DNA of 63,050 bases, the filler included, from Reticulomyxa filosa (Eukaryota > Protista > Foraminifera), in the NCBI GenBank assembly GCA_000512085.1. It is 17 parts of 17 records of this genome, joined end to end, with 100 filler letters (N's around TTAATTAATTAA, not from the genome) between each part and the next. Parts side by side here need not be neighbours in the genome. Positions count along the whole stretch, not along the records: positions 1 to 3,634 come from ASPP01007722.1; 16 more parts are not named here. One strand, written 5' to 3'. Positions within the stretch are counted from its first letter, which is position 1; each line of letters begins with the position of its first letter. Shown here in pieces: positions 1-12,623 of this stretch. Made by a program: the position numbers and the translations under genes. The notes beneath the pieces are model-generated. The model was not told the DNA's origin. It worked only from the letters and a program-made list of their open reading frames with translations, and ran no database searches.

Positions 1-105
1 GGTGGAGGACGCGGAGGTGGAGGACGCGGAGGTGGAGGACGCGGTGGTGGAGGACGCGGAGGTGGCCGAGGTCGAGGCCGAGGAGGTGGTCGAGGTGGAG
101 GTGGA
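1..105 (+). repeat. GGGR/RGG coding tandem repeat (ggaggtggaggacgc units)
   Basis: 15-nt unit repeated about 4 times, then GRG variants; in frame with Piwi exon 1. Confidence 0.9.
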
Positions 106-1525
106 CAGCAACGTGCTAAATTCCACGACAAAGCTAGTGCATCGTTAATGGACGAAGTAAACAAACTGAACGATGACGTGGAAGGTGTTCATTTAGTTCG
201 CGTATGGACTTATGAAGAAGTTTTGTATTGTGCAATTACAATTTGCAACATTTTTATTTTTTTTTATTTTTTTTTTTTATTATCAATGTCAATGCGGGAA
301 AACGGCGGGAACCTTGGAACCAATCAGAAACAAAGCATAACATTCATCATTGCTTATGTATTTGTGTAATTTTTATGTTTTTTTTTTGGGGGGGGGGGGG
401 GGCGGGGGAATAAAATAATATTACAGTCGGACTGGGAAAAAGTTGAATCGTTGTCAAAAGGCGAATGTTATTATTTCAATCGAAGCAAAAATGAGACAGT
501 GAAAACAATGCCAGACGAGCTGAAAGATAAAAAGTAAAGTGTGAGTTTTACCGTGAACAAGGTGTGAAATTTGCGGAGCGTCCATCGCAATTTCCAACCC
601 AAGGACTCCCTCCAATCGACAACGTTGTCACCAATGCCTACTTTGTCACTGGCAAACTGCTGACCACACCTATCGCCCATTACATTGTGGAGTTTGACCC
701 CCCAGTCGATCCTGAAAACTCTTTGCTGAGACAGCAAATCGTTTTGGGAAATAAGTTACACTATTTTTTTTTTTTTTTTTTATTTGGCTATTTTGACATT
801 TGATTAAAAAGTAATTTTTGACAACTTTGTTCATCGTTGGTGATAAATAACAATATATTTTGTTGATTTGTGTATGTATGTATCCTTCTCTCTCTCTCTC
901 TCTCTCGAATTGTGTTTTAATACACATTTGTAAAAAGACAGACAAAAGGCAACAACGATCGCTTGTTGCGAGAAAAATTTGGAAACTTCGTATTTGACAA
1001 CCATGCGTTGTATGCAATGGGAAAAAAGGTGCCTCGACAAATCGACAATCTTGCTTTATCCTCAACACGTTAGCTAGCTGTATATGTATACATACGTGCG
1101 CATTTTAAAAAAAAAGAATAATTTGTTTTTTTTTTTTGCAAACTTCATCTCCCCCCCTTGTAGTCTTTCAGTAAAAATGGAGTGAGTCAGTCTTTTTTTG
1201 TGGTTGTGTGACTAACATACCCCCTCCCTCCCCTTTGAATCTTCTTTCTTCTCAAATAGACAAAGTGCGATTTTATTGGTACATGGACTTGTACTTGGAC
1301 AGTCCCGAGATAACAATAGAGCAACAGCAAGCCCTGTTGAACATTTTTAATCGAAGAAAAATGATGGATTCAGGCTTTGTTAAAATCGCTCGGGGATGGT
1401 TCTACTCCAATGCCAAAAAAAGCTCCTCCGTTTAGCGAAATGGATCCAATTGATATCGACGATTGTCGCGTCCTTCAGGGCTACGAGGTTAATTAATTCT
1501 TTTTTTTAGTGTTATCTTTGTATCA

Positions 1526-1560
<35 letters not shown>

Positions 1561-1983
1561 GTCGTTGTTGTTGTGGGACATAAAAAGTGCTCCATTCAAA
1601 TGCTTGCAGCGTCGAAGAAGAGCAGAGGTGGAAATGCAGTGTTCAAGGCAGACACTGCGTCGAAGTTGGTGTCTCGCGAAACCATTCACGACTTGATCAA
1701 ACGAGAATTTGGATCGATGGATCCAAAGTCGTCCGATTTTCGTCAAGCAGTCAAGCAAAGATTGGAGAACAACTACTTTTGTCTTACATACAGTCGTCAA
1801 ACCCAAATGATTGGAGAGATTGACTTTTCTCAAAACGATCAGTCATCTTTCGAACTGCGAGTTTCGTATTTTTTTATATATATACATATATAATATATGT
1901 ATATTATGTACATATTTATATTTTTATGACGAAATGCAAGTAAAATCAATGATATTTTGTTATATGCAATACGTTTCAAAAAC

Positions 1984-2019
<36 letters not shown>

Positions 2020-3546
2020 GGGATGGCGAAAAAATAACCTATGCAAATTATTTGAAAAAAGTTTATGGAATTGACAGTCCGAAAAAAGAACTGTTTGTGA
2101 TGAAAGACAAAACGGGTAAAAAAATGTATTAAGCAGACACAACAATATATACTTATATATATGTATATATTGTGAAATAGGAAGATGCAGCTTTTTGCCG
2201 CAGCACGCTCAATTGACATTGCGATCGGACGCAATTGGCGATACGTACGCGGAGGTATTAGAGACGACGACGATGCCGATCCACGATCGTTTGCGACGTG
2301 TGGACTCATTGGTGACGCACATAAAGAAGGCGGACGAGAAGCGCAAAAACGCGAACAAGAAAGGGCCGACAAAAAAAGGGGATGAGAGCAGCGCGTCGGA
2401 AGTGGACGAAAAGAAAGTGGAAAAGAAAGACGACTTAGCGAGTTTGGATTTTGACATAAAATTAGAGCCATTAGTAATCAAAGCAGTGGAATTGAATTAT
2501 CCTGACATTGTGTACATGAGGAAAGACGGAAAAATAGTAAAGGATAATATCTTGGACTTGCAATGGGGTAAAAGTGGTGGGGGATATTTGGACAAAATGG
2601 TCCCATTGCAACGTTGGGCCATTGTAATCGATGAAAACGATCGCTATATGGAAAGCAATATCCAAAACATTACGCGAGGATGTTATTCGTTTATTGAGTC
2701 GCGCGAATTGCCGCAGAAGATGTTAGGCGAGCCGGACATTATTGGAATCAACTTTAAAGATACCGATTCTTACAGTGATGTGTTAAAAAAGAAGTACCAA
2801 TTGGTGATGTTGGCGCTGCCCGAAGGGGACCTCGGATCGCAATATAAGGCCCAGTTTACTCGCGTGCTGCAATCGAAAGAAGCCGACGAGCGAGCGTGCT
2901 TGATCCAATGTTTGCTCGGAAGAAATGCCACCAATCCAAATGTGATCAAAGGCAGTTTGGATGACGTCATGGCCAAGATCGGGAATGTGTTGTTCCAAAT
3001 CGAGCCCAACTTGCCAAATGGCGACAAGTTTATTGATTTGAAAAAGACGTGGTGTGTAGGCATTGAGTTGTCGCATCGCGCTGGAAAGCCCACGGCCGTA
3101 GTATTGGCGTTGACTACCGCTCCGCTGGAGGGAAGCTTGCGATCATGGCACTTTGCGACGCATTTAAATCCTGCCAAAAAAGACGTCATCTCGCTTGAGG
3201 CCGCGTGCAATTTGATGACCAAAGCTTTGGAAATGGCCGTGGCCGAAGTCGGCGCCAAAAACTTGCCCGCAAATATTATTGTGTTGCGTGGTGGAATGCC
3301 CGACAATCGCTTGCGCGAACTTTACTCCAAAGAGGTGGTCGGAGTGGTTCGTGCTTTGAACACTTTCAAAGAAAAACATTCAAACAACCCAGCAGTCAAA
3401 AGCTGGAAGAGCAAACTCAATTTTACGTCCGTTGCAAAAGTGTCTTGGATCGATTTGGACAGCTTGTCTCTGACGACCAAGGTCCGGATAGCGTTGGTCC
3501 TATTAATGTCCCTGCTGTCATTTATGATGGTGTCACTTCTGAAAGG
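1..3546 (+). CDS. Divergent Piwi/Argonaute protein (partial, multi-exon): RGG tail - WW-like - N - L1 - PAZ - L2 - MID - PIWI
   Basis: Exons read by eye: GGGR repeats (1-110); N domain RP..G..I.NVVTNAYFV..IAHYIVEFDP (564-750); FDNHALY (~995); L1 QALLNIFNRRKMMDSGFVKIARGWF..VLQGYE (1260-1487); PAZ LTYSRQTQMIGEIDF and GEKITYANYLKKVYGI (~2020-2110); MID LIQCLL/MAKIG; PIWI WCVGIELSH, NIIVLRGG, FTSVAKSVLDRF. One-nt homopolymer frameshifts near 530, 1420 and 3437. Both ends truncated. Confidence 0.9.
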
Positions 3547-3634
3547 TACTGTGTTGTTGTATTTTTATTTTTAAACTTATCGACAACTTTTCTCTTCCCT
3601 TTTTAAATTTTCTTGGTTGTTGTGGGGGGGGCGG

Positions 3635-7037: not shown

Positions 7038-8176
7038 GGCTTTGTTGCATGAATCAAGGTACAGACGTAGAACTGCCTTTCGTCAGAAAGTAGGCGAATT
7101 TTTTAGAGCAAGGCATACCGAGTCCTACCATTTTATTTAGAATATTTACTGCAATTTTACTTTCTGTTTTTTGACTTGAGAATGATCTCGACCTTAATTT
7201 ATTCCCTATAATTGTTTTGTACCTATACATTCCGTTTTCCGCTCTTGCACGTCTGCCGTAATCAGCATGCTTTTGCCATCGCTGCCTGCTTTTTTCAAAA
7301 ACTCTAATGTTATCGACCCTTAACTTAGAATCCGTAGGCATTTCTGGCCTAAACCCGAGATTCGGAGGTATAGCGGCCTTTATTTCAAGACCATTGCCAT
7401 ACTTCTCTTGGTGCGCAATCATCGCATCATATACAGATGGTTGGTCATACGCGCCATCTCCTAACACTGTATCTATCGGACTACTAATTTGGTTGAGTAG
7501 GTTAGGTGCCGTTGCAGAGTCGCTTATATCGTGAAATGTCAATTCCGATCCCAATATTATGCCATGGTCATCTACCGCAATATACAGCTTTCTCCAGGAT
7601 TTTCTGGTCTTAGTGAGTTTATATTTTTCTTTTTGCCACTCTTGCTCTCCATATATTTTCAAGCCGGTACTATCAATAAAAACTACTATCCCTTCATCTC
7701 TACGTATCGCTGGCGCAGTAACGTTTATACTTTTGGATCTTCTTGAAATAGTAGTGAAATCTGGAACTTCTAACTCCAGCCCTAATAACTTAACAATAGA
7801 TTCTACCAATCTTTCTGTTTGACGAAGTCTCTGCCTAAATACAAAGCTCAAGGTTATGCATGTTTCGATAGAAAAATCGGAGTATAAGAGCTGCCCGCCA
7901 CGCTTCCTTATTTTAAAAAAATCTACTTTCCATTTACTTATCACGTCGCTGGAAACCCAGATTGTTAGGCTGCCTCGATTTTTCAAACCTTCGTCATATA
8001 GCCTTGAATTGCTTGGCTTATATAATGGCTTTTTGAATTTATCACGATAAGGCTCTTTAAGCTTGTATGGCATGATGTTCCACATTAATGATTGCTCTCA
8101 AAAATACATCCTTCAATCAAATGTTCAATATCTCAATTGGATACAATACTCAAAATCCGATTCATGCAACAAAGCC
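7038..8176 (-). mobile_element. IS5-family (IS903 group) insertion sequence, 1139 bp
   Basis: Perfect 18-bp TIRs GGCTTTGTTGCATGAATC (7038-7055 and 8159-8176) resembling IS903 ends; encloses a transposase. Confidence 0.95.
7054..8085 (-). CDS. IS5/IS903-type DDE transposase, apparently intact
   Basis: RGSLTIW, PDFTTISRR, IDSTGLK, WRKLYI, GDGAYD, RARAENGMYRYK motifs; no introns. Confidence 0.95.
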   Translation of the reverse strand: MWNIMPYKLKEPYRDKFKKPLYKPSNSRLYDEGLKNRGSLTIWVSSDVISKWKVDFFKIRKRGGQLLYSDFSIETCITLSFVFRQRLRQTERLVESIVKLLGLELEVPDFTTISRRSKSINVTAPAIRRDEGIVVFIDSTGLKIYGEQEWQKEKYKLTKTRKSWRKLYIAVDDHGIILGSELTFHDISDSATAPNLLNQISSPIDTVLGDGAYDQPSVYDAMIAHQEKYGNGLEIKAAIPPNLGFRPEMPTDSKLRVDNIRVFEKSRQRWQKHADYGRRARAENGMYRYKTIIGNKLRSRSFSSQKTESKIAVNILNKMVGLGMPCSKKFAYFLTKGSSTSVP

Positions 8177-8183
8177 GATAAAT

Positions 8184-8246
8184 ATGAGCAGGAAAATCCA
8201 CAATAGCGAGCAGATCATTAGGATGTTGCGGCAAGGAGAAGTGTTG
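8184..8246 (+). pseudogene. IS3-family OrfA N-terminal fragment
   Basis: MSRKIHNSEQIIRMLRQGEVL resembles IS3/IS407-type OrfA starts. Confidence 0.6.
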
Positions 8247-8361
8247 CCATTAATATTACCTCTTTAGGAAAATGGGCTTCTTTAAATTCTATCATATCTT
8301 TACTGCTTTTTGGTCTCTATTACTCTATCTTAACATAAATCTTTAATTTTGCGACAGAGCC
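8247..8361 (-). mobile_element. IS6-family left end with truncated transposase start
   Basis: Terminus GGCTCTGTCGCAAA (IS26/IS6-like) at 8361; ATG at 8295 gives MIEFKEAHFPKEVILM, like IS6 FKGRHF..IIL. Confidence 0.75.
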
Positions 8362-8537
8362 CTTAGTGATAAACTCCTCTCCTATGGTATTAAGTTGCCT
8401 CCCACATAACTGTAATGAGTTACTCGCTTCTGAATGCCTGCAAGAGCGATGGAGCTAGTAGTTCGTATTACCTGCTATTAATTTATGGTAGATATGGTAC
8501 CATATGAAAACATAAAATTAGATTGAATAGGAAAGAG

Positions 8538-8660
8538 ATGAGCAGATATTTAGATGCAACAAACGACCTGGCATTTAAGAAGGTATTTTCAGATAAGGGA
8601 ATAATGAAAGACTTTTTAAATAGTATCCTGGGAGAATCATGGGGAAGTATAATAGAGGAA
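8538..8660 (+). CDS. Rpn / PD-(D/E)XK nuclease-family putative transposase, N-terminal fragment
   Basis: MSRYLDATNDLAFKKVFS..MKDFLNSIL, the typical LDP.ND.AFKK.F start; cut by contig end. Confidence 0.85.
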
Positions 8661-10067
8661 NNNNNNNNNNNNNNNNNNNNNNNNNNNNNNNNNNNNNNNN
8701 NNNNTTAATTAATTAANNNNNNNNNNNNNNNNNNNNNNNNNNNNNNNNNNNNNNNNNNNNCTCCAGGTTCTCTACACGCGCTAAAAAACCAAAACAAAAA
8801 GAATCAAATTAATGTTAAGATAAACAATAATTAATTGGACAAAAACTTAAAAAAAATTCAATATATAAGATTAAAAAGTGAAATTGGTCTAATCATTGTG
8901 AGTACCACATATGTGCTAGTATATGATGTGGTCTAACCTTGCATCCTTTTGCCTTCATAAGTCATGAAAAATTTAAAAATAATTTGAAAAATAACAATTT
9001 TTAAATTAAACCAAAAAAAAGGATTCTAAAATATGTGTAAATTGTTTTGTTTTTTGTAAGTTAATAATAATCATTGTGCACTTGGTTGCTTCTTGGTTCG
9101 GCGACAAATCCGGAAAATGCGCTTCTCATGAATAGAATGTTCTTTTTTCGAATTTGGTCTTCAATGTCTTTTCTTTGACATTTGAGATCATGGCTAACTC
9201 TGGTCACATGCCAGATGAATGTTTTTATTTATTTTTTTTTGATCAATCTAATAAAACGTTATTATAAAACTTTTTTATATTAAAACTACAAGTTTTTAAA
9301 AATTAGTGTTAAATGTTTATTTTTCATGAAGAAAATAGGTTCTCTTCATATGGATGCCATTTACACAGTCAGTTTTTTTTCAATATACTGTAATGCATAA
9401 GTCAAATTTGGGAAAGGATTGAAAACGTCAACAACGAAAAACTTGATAATTTTCACCACTACAAAGCTAGTCCAAACGTCTAAAAGTTCGTCACCTTGGA
9501 ACAGTACCAGATACAAACAGCAATATGCATGAGCTAGAGAAAATTTGCATTGCAAAACAATACTGTGGTTTTTGTTAAAAAAGTAATCAAACAAAGAAGA
9601 ATGCATGTTGTACAATGTACAGTGACAAGTAATCATAATTAACCCCATTAAGAGTTGTTCTTACGTTTTCAAATCTAGTCATCAGATTCTATTCGTAACC
9701 TAGTTTTACTACATCAATGAGTGCAAGTACTAAGTGTAATACAAGCTTTGCTTATTTTGAGTAAATTCAATAGCTTAAAAAACATATCATACATAATCAC
9801 CGTTCTCAGTCAAATCGACAATTGAATAAGGCTATGTTTCGCCTCACACAATTTTTGTTCGATTTCTGGAAACAATAATTGAATTAAGAATGTGGCGCTT
9901 GGGATAAAATTTTTTAAATTAGTAATGGGGATATAGTATTACAAATAAAATTTGGCATTAACATATTAGATTGTTCAAAATGAGCCAATCAGTTAACTTA
10001 TGAAAAAAAAGAAAAGTAAACACCATTGAAATCTCCAATCAAACCACTTTTTGCCAAAAAAAAAAGT

Positions 10068-12623
10068 TTATGGCTTCCACCAAATAGGTTGCATTTGGCG
10101 AAATAGTTGCATAATTTCTCCAACGAACATTTGCTTTTCAGAAGTGTCTGCAACGATATTGCTTGTCAGACTTTGAAGAATTTTTTCTTCTCTGGAAATC
10201 GAAGTGCATTCTTGAGAGCCATTTTTGATGTCATTTGTTATAGGTTCACCAGAGGAATTTGGGACCCATGGCGAAGCCAAATTGGTCCTAACTTCGTCAT
10301 ATCCTTCATTACTGTATCGTTCCACCAGAGCCCTCTATTTTAAATTTTATACAAGCTTAATATATTATATCTCTTGGCGCACTTGACAAAAAAAAAAGAT
10401 ATTATATAAATGTATATATTTATAAATATAATAACAATTTGTTGGAATAGCCACGAGTTAGAAGTCAAGGAGGAAAGAGGTGCAGGAGAAGGAGTATTGA
10501 ATTGGACGGGAAGGAAAGAGCCATCATCGTCTTTGAGTACATCGAACCAGCGATACTCTGCGCTGCTGGTGGCAGAGCTCCAACTACCAATGATCAGTCC
10601 AATGTAGGGTTGGGGTGTAAACGTATCATTGGCTTGCGAATGATGTTTATTTGCAATAGAATGCGAGTCGCGCCGATGTGTAACTTTGACACTCATGTGT
10701 TGATCCAAGTCGCGATTGGAAGGGTAGTTTTGGAACGTAGGATGCGAGTGATACCATCCAACAACTTGTAATCCATTGTCGACAATTTCTTGCGTGATTT
10801 TAATTTGATCACAAGGATCGGCATTCACTTCACGAGCCGCATGTTGCTCTTCAAGCAACGGGTAACACCGAACGACGCGACAAGTGTGTTGATAACTTTC
10901 GACTCCGTCCACGCATACTTTCGTCTGTGTCACACTCCCCGCCAGCAGTCCTACTATCTCGTTCTCTTGACACAAGTGTGCATGCAGTTCGGCCACTATC
11001 AATGCGTTGGGACAATATTCTATCTATACAATTGTCCAAACTGCTCTTTCATACAATTATCTTTTTTAACACAGTTGTATCAATGGAGATACTCTTCAGA
11101 ACCTGAAAAGGTTGGGTTCGTTCTTTTTTGGAAGGATTCATTTGATAAGGAGCGTACAATTCAATATCACTTCGTAAGCAAAATTCATTGTCATCAAGAT
11201 GCGGCACCCATCGAGTGCATTTGCGCTCTCGCGTCGACCGTCGGAGTACCAAAGGCTCACTGCCTTCAATCTATTCATCAATCCGCATAAACACATATAT
11301 TATATTGTTTGAAAGATTAAACCGATCTTTGAGACGAATACCTGGCCATCGTCATCTGTTGTTACATCACTCGAGTCATCACACTTCGGACGTCTTTTTT
11401 TGTGTGTCTTTTTTTTGGCAGCAGCGGTTGCATCGGTTGTGGTTTGCTCCTTTTCTTTACCATCTTCCACCGCTGCTTCTTTTTTCTTATCAATGTCTTC
11501 GTCATTTTTTGTCGCTTGGCGTCTCATTTTCGCCGCACCTTCCTCATCAGATATCACTCCATCAATCATGGGCACATTTTCCAACTTACCAAACATGCGC
11601 TTGACAATACTTGAGTGCTTGTTCAATTTGTTCCCAGACAACGTATACCCATTCCCACTTTCCAACACCTTACTTGGCAAAGCCTCGCCTTTTTTTAGCA
11701 ACTTTATGAAATGGACTTGTGCATGTGAGCGGATGGATGCTTCATCTCGAGTTCCCATGAACGTACTTATCTTTTTTATTATTCCCCCTCAGGCTACATT
11801 ATTTAACTTCCCAGCGTAAAAAAAAAAAGGTAAGAAAAACTTGCTTCCAATCCCTTCCAAACAATTCCAAAGCCTGTGTAAATTTGCTGTGTTCACAGTC
11901 GGTCCAAGGTGCCACTTTTTTACGTTTTTTTAAAGGGGGTCCCTCTTCCTCTTCCTCTTCTTGCTTCTTCTCTTTTTCAACATTGCTTACTGTATCACCT
12001 TCGGGGTGTGGCATAAAGTCCGCTAATTTATTTTATTAGTTTGTTTTTTAAATAAATTTAGTTTTGATGACTGTGCAAAAAAAAAAAAAAATTATTTAAA
12101 TACTGAGTTTTCTTTTGACGGCCTTTTTTTTGTTGGAAGTAGGATGGTTGTCCTGCAATTGGTTAGATAGTGAATCAGAGCTTTGAATTGATGGACCAAC
12201 GACATTGACGCTCTCATTTTCTTTGTTTTGATTTTCTTTGTTGTCATTATCGGTGTTTTTATCAGCCGAAGCAGCGTCATCCTTCTTTGGAATCGTTTGC
12301 CTTGTTTGTAGCTGTGGCGCGGGTGAGGAAGGTGGGTCTCTCTTGCTCCTCCCCCTTCCTCGTCCTTTTTGCTTTGCACTTCGCTTTTCCTCTTTCGTTG
12401 GAACATAGTCTTCGTCACTGCTGTCCTTCTCTCTCTTTTTTTTTTCGCTTTCCCTTTTTTTCGTCTTCACGTCCTAAGCTTGCGAGGACTGCCTCTATGT
12501 CTTCATCTTTTTTTTTAAACATTATCTCGTTGGACGGTTTTCTGCAAACAAAGTTTTGTCTTTTTTTTGGTGTATGTCTTTGCTCTTTTTCTTGTCACCA
12601 GCAACAAAGTCGTCGTGATCCAT
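10068..12623 (-). CDS. MYSM1-like Myb/SANT + MPN+/JAMM deubiquitinase (multi-exon)
   Basis: PWTDCEHSKFTQALELFGRDWKQ..GTRDEASIRSHAQ (SHAQKYF-class Myb); HAHL..EIVGLLAG and VVGWYHSHP...PSNRD (JAMM). Confidence 0.85.

Follow-up and report, generated by a model that had tools for sequence, protein, structure and literature searches.

To our knowledge, eukaryotic Argonautes are remarkably uniform in architecture. Their partners are normally recruited by disordered tails (RG repeats) or by adaptors (the GW182 and Tudor families), and RG/RGG N-terminal tails are present in animal PIWIs and in the Argonautes of Trypanosoma and Toxoplasma. The WW domains of Prp40, PRPF40A, TCERG1, Pin1 and PCIF1 bind proline motifs of splicing factors or the phospho-CTD. 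In WW domains the second Trp stacks on the ligand proline and loop 1 determines specificity; in Pin1, Arg14 and Arg17 are the phosphate-binding residues. The WW motif of DGCR8 sits in a heme-binding dimerisation region. In the literature searched, no Argonaute that carries a WW module is described, in agreement with an earlier reading of the same DNA (the sequence-only reading), whose author knew of no canonical Argonaute of this kind.

The window (the whole stretch of DNA that was analysed, 63,050 nucleotides) begins with a contig of the foraminifer Reticulomyxa filosa (3,634 nt, positions 1–3634) that holds the 5' three-quarters of one divergent gene of the Argonaute/Piwi superfamily. We find that the RGG - WW - Argonaute architecture is real. 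With considerable confidence, we suggest that the product is a divergent Argonaute/Piwi protein in which an RGG tail, a short helical linker and a WW-fold domain precede the N, PAZ, MID and Piwi domains, and that it would serve as a non-slicing scaffold that recruits partners.

Gene structure and annotation

The features assigned to the contig, and the basis for each, are as follows.

1–105, + strand: RGG/GGGR repeat tail, from translation; cut by the 5' edge of the contig, with the start codon outside it
106–219, + strand: conserved linker (QQRAKFHDKASASLMDEVNKLN... helix, then strand HLVRVWTYEE) and end of exon 1, phase 0; aligns with the paralog and relatives
220–426, + strand: intron 1, GT...AG, 207 nt, with many T runs and a G15 run; paralog intron at the homologous codon boundary
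427–513, + strand: WW-fold module SDWEKVESLSKGECYYFNRSKNETVKTMP; Pfam WW, family profile against the PDB, AF2 and Foldseek
514–548, + strand: short helix/linker after the WW module (DELKDKK-V-KCEFY), which holds the frame break; AF2 helix, P0006 residues 30–36
529–533, + strand: A5 homopolymer with frame slip; sister contig L003 has A6 and an open frame
535–537, + strand: apparent TAA stop, an effect of the A5 length by comparison with L003
540–754, + strand: remainder of exon 2 in frame 3, which opens the Argonaute N domain and closes at a phase 2 donor (GT at 755); paralog 57% identical
938–1068, + strand: exon 3 (..NDRLLREKFGNFVFDNHALYAMGKK..), N domain continued; acceptor AG at 936–937, donor GT at 1069; from alignment
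1260–1487, + strand: exon 4 (KVRFYWYMDLYLDSPEITIEQQQALLNIF...QGYE), with a second frame break in an A7 run at 1415–1421; from alignment, frame 2 to frame 3
1588–1860, + strand: exon 5, start of the PAZ domain; Pfam PAZ E = 0.0025 (paralog PAZ E = 8e-5)
2018–2115, + strand: exon 6 (GEKITYANYLKKVYGIDSPKKELFVMKDKT); 5' boundary approximate, adjoining A29 and G6 runs; from alignment
2181–3545, + strand: large exon with L2-MID and the first half of the Piwi domain, donor at 3546; Pfam Piwi E = 1e-4 and alignments

Frame 1 of 1–219 runs from the GGGR repeats to ...HLVRVWTYEE and is followed by a GT at 220–221. RG-rich tails of the same kind open the paralog on L001 (from the ATG at 8291), the L004 ORF and the relative P0028; in an AF2 model of P0028:52–340, pLDDT is below 50 for the linker helix and about 67 for the strand. 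Downstream of the AG at 425–426, 427–534 translates as SDWEKVESLSKGECYYFNRSKNETVKTMPDELKDKK before the TAA at 535–537, and the frame from 540 translates as CEFYREQGVKFAERPSQF..TNAYFVTG..HYIVEFDP. The paralog intron (L001 8579–8670) falls at the same codon boundary as intron 1, and the intron-free ORFs of relatives continue straight over the exon 1/exon 2 junction. On the evidence of the sister contig, the paralog and homologs, the predicted splice is 219|427, with the WW module and the N domain together on one exon (427–754). The gene model of the sequence-only reading, which had this splice and, given a 1-nt homopolymer slip, this shared exon, is borne out by the exon boundaries, by L003 and by the paralog. 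Splicing of exon 1 directly to 540 or 579, skipping the WW module, would be in frame, but this form is absent from paralogs and relatives. A micro-exon at about 1169–1178 is needless, as 1068|1260 splices in frame in both contig and paralog. A third frame break lies in a T4 run (3421–3424) within the large exon, and the 3' end of the contig falls in the intron after the donor at 3546. Exons were searched one by one, with P0006, P0028 and the L004 ORF as stand-ins for the joined protein.

The contig's own annotated protein is RFI_10474 (100% match); this GenBank model begins at 1283. The R. filosa annotation also misses or fragments other WW-Argonaute genes: RFI_33569 stands as an orphan of 105 aa, and the paralog on L001 appears in two pieces.

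The WW-fold module and its Argonaute family

Pfam WW (PF00397) is the sole hit of the 36-aa peptide encoded by 427–534 (E = 0.0069; 16.8 bits against a gathering score of 26.9), and the WW segment of the paralog, at 12.5 bits, is also below that score. Isolated segments of two relatives, P0028:85–135 (31.8 bits) and P0013:30–80 (28.0 bits), exceed it. NCBIfam yielded no useful match. In place of two Trp residues 20–22 positions apart, the module has a first Trp (codon 433–435) and, at the second position, the Lys noted in the sequence-only reading (codon 502–504). The elements of the hydrophobic buckle, YYFN (469–480) and the terminal Pro (511–513), are kept; Tyr, Asn and Pro do not vary across 10 members of the family. 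The second position is Trp in P0013 and P0028, Phe in P0007 and P0010, and Asp, Ser or Glu in the other R. filosa-group copies; Trp is absent there from all four R. filosa copies and from the related P0008 and P0012. The ESLSKG loop is strongly conserved, being invariant or nearly so across copies that are 30–50% identical overall.

Searched with a profile built from 10 family segments, the PDB gave 104 distinct sequences at E ≤ 1; 60 of these were listed, and almost every one of the 60 is a WW domain. The top entries among the matches listed are the WW domains of Prp40, TCERG1, PRPF40A and Pin1, with E-values of 1e-13 for TCERG1, 1e-11 for Prp40 and 3e-5 for Pin1; the best single-domain E-values among these matches are 2.8e-5 (Prp40) and 3e-5 (Pin1). 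Two weak rows among the matches listed (E ~0.005) are not WW domains and belong to endo-alpha-N-acetylgalactosaminidase.

The AF2 model of P0006:1–45 has strands at residues 3–7, 14–18 and 23–25, with pLDDT of 81–85 over residues 1–30. When this model was compared with the PDB by Foldseek, the best 50 matches were all WW domains (rmsd 0.6–1.5 Å), a result to be read with the caveat that sequence similarity alone may pull an AlphaFold model toward the WW fold. The WW domain of Pin1 superposes at 0.6–0.9 Å over 28 residues, gap-free and with 43% identity over the 28 columns, as expected from the gap-free alignment to Pin1 proposed earlier. By sequence comparison, the similarity of the module at 427–513 to WW domains is better than chance. 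The WW assignment holds, given that relatives exceed the Pfam threshold and that profile and fold searches return WW domains almost exclusively. The description "Pin1-like" needs qualification: the similarity to Pin1 is real, but by profile the module is equally close to the WW domains of Prp40 and TCERG1. The suggested check with HMMER and AlphaFold likewise gave a three-stranded WW model and relatives that pass PF00397, but a score for the contig's own segment of 16.8 bits against 26.9.

In Pfam, the Piwi domain, which is cut by the contig end, falls short of the gathering score with 22.1 bits (E = 1e-4); P0002, a paralog from R. filosa, is above threshold at 44.6 bits, and relatives reach 68–90 bits. 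For PAZ, contig (18.2 bits) and paralog (23 bits) are both below the gathering score of 28.8, and the relatives P0007, P0010, P0013 and P0031 score 29–39 bits. Pfam ArgoN had no hit in the contig, the paralog or the relatives scanned. An AF2 model of the P0028 region homologous to 540–754 matched the N-L1 region of hAgo2, MIWI, Siwi and MILI in Foldseek (probability 1.0, E down to 7e-5). As a lead only, a feature search points to ArgoN/ArgoL1 clusters for the N region. Searched against the PDB, phmmer with P0002 found nothing; the Argonaute matches came with the family profile, which found QDE-2, AGO1–4 and PIWI proteins (E down to 6e-16). The predicted Piwi domain and the modelled N-L1 fold put the gene in the Argonaute/PIWI superfamily. 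To this extent (Piwi in Pfam, N-L1 fold and PDB profile, with PAZ hits below threshold in contig and paralog) the original Piwi/Argonaute call stands at the level of the superfamily; the clade may be either Piwi or Ago.

Alignment to QDE-2 and AGO4 places Glu at the first catalytic Asp position (GIELSH, 3059–3076) and Gly at the second (LRGG, 3284–3295), where relatives have GLDVSH and FRDG. Both replacements are common to all R. filosa-group copies compared. We used the catalytic DEDH tetrad as a criterion of slicing, not of membership in the Argonaute family; the region of its fourth residue, His, is beyond the contig end.

In the paralog, L001 8671–8999 is one open exon (TPWVKAESLTKESFYYYNRETN...CYEEHRAKFEERPSRF...) preceded by an intron positioned as in contig 1–3634, and its WW module is 48% identical to that of the contig (E = 5e-7). 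The search for WW + Piwi architectures that had been suggested was productive: phmmer with the L001 WW-N exon found nine database relatives, all nine of which cover both the WW and the N part, and L004 and P0028 are single ORFs (1,024 and 1,006 aa) with the whole RGG - WW - PAZ - Piwi order. P0028 bears a precomputed PF00397 annotation. Environmental relatives encode RGG-linker-WW-N-PAZ-Piwi in single ORFs of ~1,000 aa. These relatives are apparently marine planktonic; the source assembly of P0011 and P0012 is GCA_024449935.1. In R. filosa and the environmental relatives, the WW domain belongs to the Argonaute subfamily as a whole, as an ancestral trait that has been conserved. The architecture is present as first described, but it is not confined to one odd gene: at least four copies in R. 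filosa carry the module, and so do environmental relatives, among which some have a WW domain that is canonical throughout.

Possible roles of the module and state of the copy

The R. filosa copies have kept the first Trp, Tyr-Tyr, Asn, terminal Pro and ESLSKG, and have lost the ligand-stacking Trp and both catalytic Asp. The protein may be seen as a candidate non-slicing scaffold, loaded with guide RNA, which would dock partners through its WW domain and its RGG tail, the latter likely by contacting RNA or, once arginine-methylated, Tudor proteins. Relatives whose WW domain is intact probably bind a proline-containing motif; binding by the R. filosa copies may be altered (dependent on loop 1 and Tyr) or reduced to a structural role.

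It is possible, if somewhat unlikely, that the R. filosa domain is a structural relic, kept for a fold that would space or pack the N-terminal lobe, with its peptide binding gone. The absence of the second Trp from the four R. filosa copies as well as from P0008 and P0012 is consistent with this, as is the further erosion of the motif in P0030–P0032. The near-invariance of the fold residues and the ESLSKG loop among copies 30–50% identical points instead to selection beyond that on a spacer, and loop 1 is the part of WW domains that generally sets specificity.

The sequence-only reading had raised a different role, in which the domain binds proline-rich or phospho-Ser-Pro motifs (Pol II CTD, splicing factors) and so couples small-RNA targeting to transcription or splicing. 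Among the matches listed, the WW domains of solved structure that come closest are those of Prp40, PRPF40A, TCERG1, Pin1 and PCIF1. Loop 1 has the unusual length of that in Pin1, and a Ser and a Tyr that do not vary in the family fall at the positions of Pin1 Ser16 and Tyr23. The second Trp is present in P0013 and P0028 or replaced by Phe in P0007 and P0010, and a protein predicted to be slicer-dead would have to work by recruitment. On the other hand, the positions of Pin1 Arg14 and Arg17 are Val and Leu in the contig's module, and the second Trp is Lys here and Asp, Ser or Glu in other R. filosa-group copies. Its loss argues, at the level of sequence, against canonical proline-peptide binding by the contig copy, and together with the Val and Leu it weakens a phospho-CTD/Pol II role for this copy. 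Ligand class is, moreover, poorly predictable from WW similarity, and we regard the coupling role as improbable.

Also improbable is a Retaria-wide (foraminiferal, perhaps radiolarian) Argonaute subfamily that, guide-loaded, would dock through its WW domain onto proline-rich or phosphorylated nuclear partners (Pol II CTD, Prp40/SF1-type splicing factors). If true, it would be a one-protein link from small-RNA targeting to co-transcriptional silencing or to large-scale nuclear and genome remodelling, which foraminiferal life cycles show. A 2026 preprint reports up-regulation of PIWI in 'Zerfall' cells of Allogromia.

In the WW-N exon, the change of frame is confined to the A5 run at 529–533, with frame 1 closing at 535 and frame 3 opening at 531. 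Over contig 383–800 (~417 nt, introns included) the R. filosa contig L003 (ASPP01031731.1) is identical save for homopolymer lengths; it carries A6 where contig 1–3634 carries A5 and reads ...DKKVKCEFYREQ... in one frame. Its product, P0006 (RFI_33569), contains DKKVKCEFYREQ, with WW and N domain in a single frame. Because the otherwise identical L003 has A6 and an open frame, the stop at 535–537 is almost certainly an artefact of a one-base homopolymer miscall (A5 for A6), which matches the 1-nt slip placed near 530 by the earlier reading. A tiny intron from 534 to ~578 that would bridge the break has no acceptor in the right phase, and the exon is continuous in L003 and the paralog. Homopolymer frame breaks are in themselves a warning on the quality of the R. 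filosa assembly.

The breaks in A7 (1415–1421) and T4 (3421–3424) lie outside the L003 overlap, and the contig copy could be decaying. A decaying pseudogene, in which the stop at 535 and the two other frameshifts are real and only other copies (e.g., those of L003 and the L001 paralog) are functional, would fit three intra-exon frame breaks within 3.6 kb, a Piwi domain and a WW domain that have lost their catalytic Asp residues and second Trp, respectively, and a GenBank model that could start only at 1283. Yet all three breaks fall within homopolymers, there are no in-frame stops outside them, and the restriction of differences from L003 to homopolymer lengths over ~417 nt is the mark that miscalled bases leave and that diverging copies do not. 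All R. filosa-group copies share the Asp and Trp replacements, and because the intact P0002 and P0004 are among them, these replacements are traits of the lineage and no sign of decay. We consider a pseudogene a poor prospect.

It is highly improbable that the WW resemblance is chance, or that 427–534 is a separate, alternative or poison exon outside the Argonaute protein: the contig segment alone is below the Pfam threshold and, as assembled, ends in a stop, but it is in frame and contiguous with the N domain in L003, the paralog and 9/9 relatives, relatives pass the threshold, and profile and fold searches give WW domains almost exclusively.

Comparison with known systems

A conserved globular peptide-binding domain inside an Argonaute would be a different route to effector recruitment, and these WW-Argonautes occur in a major eukaryotic group that is molecularly almost unexplored. 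The family is a natural series from canonical WW through the Phe variant to Trp-less forms, in parallel with retention or loss of the slicer residues, which makes the role of the WW domain directly testable.

With the WW domains of Pin1, Prp40/PRPF40A (FBP11) and TCERG1 (CA150), the module shares a length of ~30 residues, a three-stranded sheet, the first Trp, the Tyr-Tyr-aromatic-Asn strand and the terminal Pro. Loop 1 length is common to Pin1, and a P-x-E-L motif after the WW domain is common to Prp40 and TCERG1. Unlike these domains, the contig copy has Lys for the second Trp (Trp or Phe in some relatives), and Pin1 Arg14 and Arg17 are not conserved. The host protein also differs, being an Argonaute here and an isomerase or a splicing/elongation factor in Pin1, Prp40 and TCERG1. 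DGCR8/Pasha, a cofactor of the Microprocessor, is likewise a small-RNA-pathway protein with a WW motif, but it is a dsRNA-binding cofactor and not an Argonaute, and homology is limited to the WW fold.

Human AGO4, which is naturally slicer-inactive, shares replacement of the second catalytic Asp by Gly in the motif R-G-G, a likeness that points to recruitment and not cleavage; in R. filosa the first catalytic Asp is also replaced (Glu), and there is no close sequence relationship. RG-tailed eukaryotic Argonaute/PIWI proteins share the RGG-rich N-terminal tail followed by N, PAZ, MID and Piwi. The R. filosa sequence is very divergent from these, with a Piwi domain barely at the Pfam threshold, and the foraminiferal family differs from them in its additional globular WW domain between the tail and the N domain.

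Gene structure and reading frame of the window Argonaute

Window positions 1-3634 are one whole contig (ASPP01007722.1) of the draft genome GCA_000512085.1 of the freshwater foraminiferan Reticulomyxa filosa. They carry a divergent Argonaute/Piwi gene.

Features of the window gene discussed in this section
1-219, + strand: exon 1
220-426, + strand: intron 1
427-754, + strand: exon 2, WW module and start of the N domain
529-533: A5 run with frame break
1415-1421: A7 run with frame break
3421-3424: T4 run with frame break
257-278, 378-402, 764-781, 887-906, 1988-2016 and 3624-3631: homopolymer/microsatellite sites

Frame 1 of exon 1 encodes GGGR repeats followed by QQRAKFHDKASASLMDEVNKLNDDVEGVHLVRVWTYEE, with a GT at 220. 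After the AG at 425-426, positions 427-534 translate as SDWEKVESLSKGECYYFNRSKNETVKTMPDELKDKK, then TAA, and the frame opening at 540 reads CEFYREQGVKFAERPSQF...TNAYFVTG...HYIVEFDP. Since frame 1 runs into its stop at 535 and frame 3 has no open stretch before 531, any change of frame must sit in the A5 run. The sequence-only reading was correct in all of its sequence statements: the GGGR exon, the GT at 220, the AG before 427, a 1-nt slip near 530 and the N-domain reading. The slip is corroborated by L003, a second contig of the same assembly (ASPP01031731.1, 417 nt), which shows zero substitutions relative to window 383-800 in either exon or intron. The differences are in homopolymer lengths only (the T/G runs of intron 1, A6 vs A5 in the window for the 529-533 run, and where the T-run after 755 begins), as expected from homopolymer miscalls. 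We take the assembly to have been built from 454 reads. P0006, the partial R. filosa protein RFI_33569 from L003, was recovered by exhaustive protein search and reads SDWEKVESL...DKKVKCEFYREQGVKFAERPSQF... uninterrupted, with WW and N in one frame.

Comparison with a paralog and more distant relatives revealed two more intra-exon frame changes, inside the A7 and T4 runs. At the former, ...RGWFYSNAKK resumes in another frame as APPFSEMDPIDID; at the latter, ...KSKLNF resumes as YVRCKSVLDRFGQ. A decaying gene copy may lie behind these two breaks; from their sequence context they are probably miscalls like that at 529-533, and we read all three as assembly errors.

The large exon is a 100% match (word search) to "hypothetical protein RFI_10474 [Reticulomyxa filosa]", and downstream exons give weak PAZ and Piwi signals (Pfam). 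Nothing of the previously described RGG tail, WW or N-domain start is present in the RFI_10474 model. This GenBank model (1283-3574) starts at an internal Met at about 1283, skipping exons 1-3; it also turns the (ATT)n/(GTT)n microsatellite at 1526-1572, which is intron sequence, into a poly-Ile/Val stretch. A separate annotation, the 105-aa orphan RFI_33569 on the redundant 417-nt contig, covers the WW-N exon. Window introns are rich in long homopolymers and microsatellites (T12, T10+G15, T18, (TC)n, A29). Both contig ends lie in low-complexity sequence, which is probably why the assembly broke there.

The WW module in paralogs and relatives

The WW-like piece belongs to the Argonaute protein. 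In a paralog on R. filosa contig L001 (RFI_27655 plus the gene call upstream), an ATG at 8291 opens an RG-rich exon ending ...CWIFDN, followed by a GT at the same codon boundary as window intron 1. Positions 8671-8999 are then a single open exon, TPWVKAESLTKESFYYYNRETNTRNDTIPSELNGKTGQLCYEEHRAKFEERPSRF...IAHYLVTFDP. The ATG at 8291 appears to be the true start; the one gene in the region 7548-11964 currently stands as two separate calls, 7548-9277 and 10001-11964. When this exon was used as a query, all nine proteins found (9/9) aligned over both the WW-like and N-domain parts. They include the R. filosa paralogs RFI_09739 and RFI_12797, two proteins of a different NCBI assembly (GCA_024449935.1) and several JGI/IMG environmental proteins. 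On contigs L004 and L005 the relatives are single unbroken ORFs, 1,024 and 1,006 aa long, in which an RGG tail and linker precede the WW, PAZ and Piwi domains. One relative also occurs in the "merc" source, presumably the Tara Oceans eukaryotic metatranscriptome catalogue, and the environmental sequences are most likely transcript assemblies. Their ORFs pass straight across the junction homologous to window 219|427. The shared intron site, the open WW-N exon and these continuous ORFs support the 219/427 gene model and the RGG-WW-N architecture proposed earlier.

The region after the WW is Argonaute N-L1 by fold: the AF2 model of residues 52-340 of the relative P0028 matches hAgo2, MIWI, Siwi and MILI (probability 1.0, E down to 7e-5). 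In this model the segment just before the WW (KRVRFYCY; HLVRVWTYEE in the window, 187-219) is a predicted beta strand, possibly adding to the sheet of the WW domain or packing against the N domain.

Full-text literature searches (Argonaute + WW; Reticulomyxa/foraminifera + Argonaute/Piwi) found no description of an Argonaute-WW fusion; the only foraminiferal mention found was PIWI up-regulation in Allogromia "Zerfall" cells. An automatic WW+PAZ+Piwi annotation already exists in a database for one environmental protein. Thus, these sequences are in public databases, though apparently undescribed.

Identity of the WW module

Pfam WW was the sole match of the window peptide, at a sub-threshold score (16.8 bits, E=0.0069). 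Isolated WW segments of the relatives P0013 (28.0 bits) and P0028 (31.8 bits), which have the full signature W-x21-W-x2-P, score above the Pfam gathering score. Across the family alignment the loop 1 Ser, first Tyr, Asn and terminal Pro are invariant and the first Trp nearly so. Searched against 177,635 PDB sequences, a ten-segment profile gave matches to 104 distinct ones (best single-domain E-values about 3e-5), and nearly all of the best 60 are WW domains (TCERG1, Prp40, PRPF40A, Pin1, PCIF1 and others). AlphaFold predicts three strands then a helix for P0006:1-45, identical to the window (pLDDT 81-85 across residues 1-30), and every one of the best 50 PDB structures matched by Foldseek is a WW domain. 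The model superposes on the Pin1 WW at 0.6-0.9 Å over 28 residues (43% identity); this and every other structural statement, on the N-L1 region too, is a prediction from shallow alignments (10-12 sequences). From descent and predicted fold, we assign the module to the WW domains, as first proposed.

Judged by the alignment, the window copy is atypical at the ligand-binding Trp. The second-Trp position is Phe in P0007 and P0010, and Lys, Asp, Ser or Glu in R. filosa-group copies; the Lys noted earlier in the window copy is confirmed. Degeneration of the module may have happened more than once in the family. The motif is eroded further in the more distant environmental relatives P0030, P0031 and P0032. 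In P0030 it has an insertion and has lost the Asn. The P0031 and P0032 predictions begin inside the module, and their 5' ends are possibly incomplete.

Putative ligand binding, catalytic residues and proposed mode of action

The data show the order of parts, how it is conserved and which residues are kept or replaced; the mode of action is inferred. Relatives with the canonical aromatic pair (Tyr + Trp/Phe) would be expected by default, like other WW domains, to bind a proline-containing motif. In the window WW, the proline-stacking Trp is replaced by Lys, and Pin1 phosphate-binding Arg14/Arg17 by Val/Leu, making canonical PPxY or pSer-Pro binding doubtful. The loop ESLSKG is strikingly conserved, and its invariant Ser aligns with Pin1 Ser16. 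This loop and the invariant Tyr suggest continuing selection on the domain, whether for binding a changed ligand or for some structural part in the N lobe. A link to Pol II or splicing, as raised in the sequence-only reading, may exist; the closest solved WW domains come from proteins of the Prp40/TCERG1/Pin1/PCIF1 type.

The WW-Argonaute family is very divergent. P0028 alone has its best structure matches in the PIWI clade, and a Piwi-domain profile places QDE-2 and AGO1-4 slightly ahead of PIWIs. In alignments, the apparently marine relatives retain G-L-D-V-S-H and F-R-D-G; the window protein, the paralog P0002, P0003 and P0004 have (I/M)-E-L-S-H and L-R-G-G instead, with both catalytic Asp positions changed.

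Replaced catalytic Asp positions in the window Piwi domain
3059-3076: GIELSH
3284-3301: LRGGMP

Therefore, the R. filosa-group proteins are predicted to be slicer-inactive. A non-slicing Argonaute would act via partner recruitment, with the RGG tail and WW domain as putative docking surfaces. The L-R-G-G substitution of the R. filosa-group Argonautes is the same as that in human AGO4.
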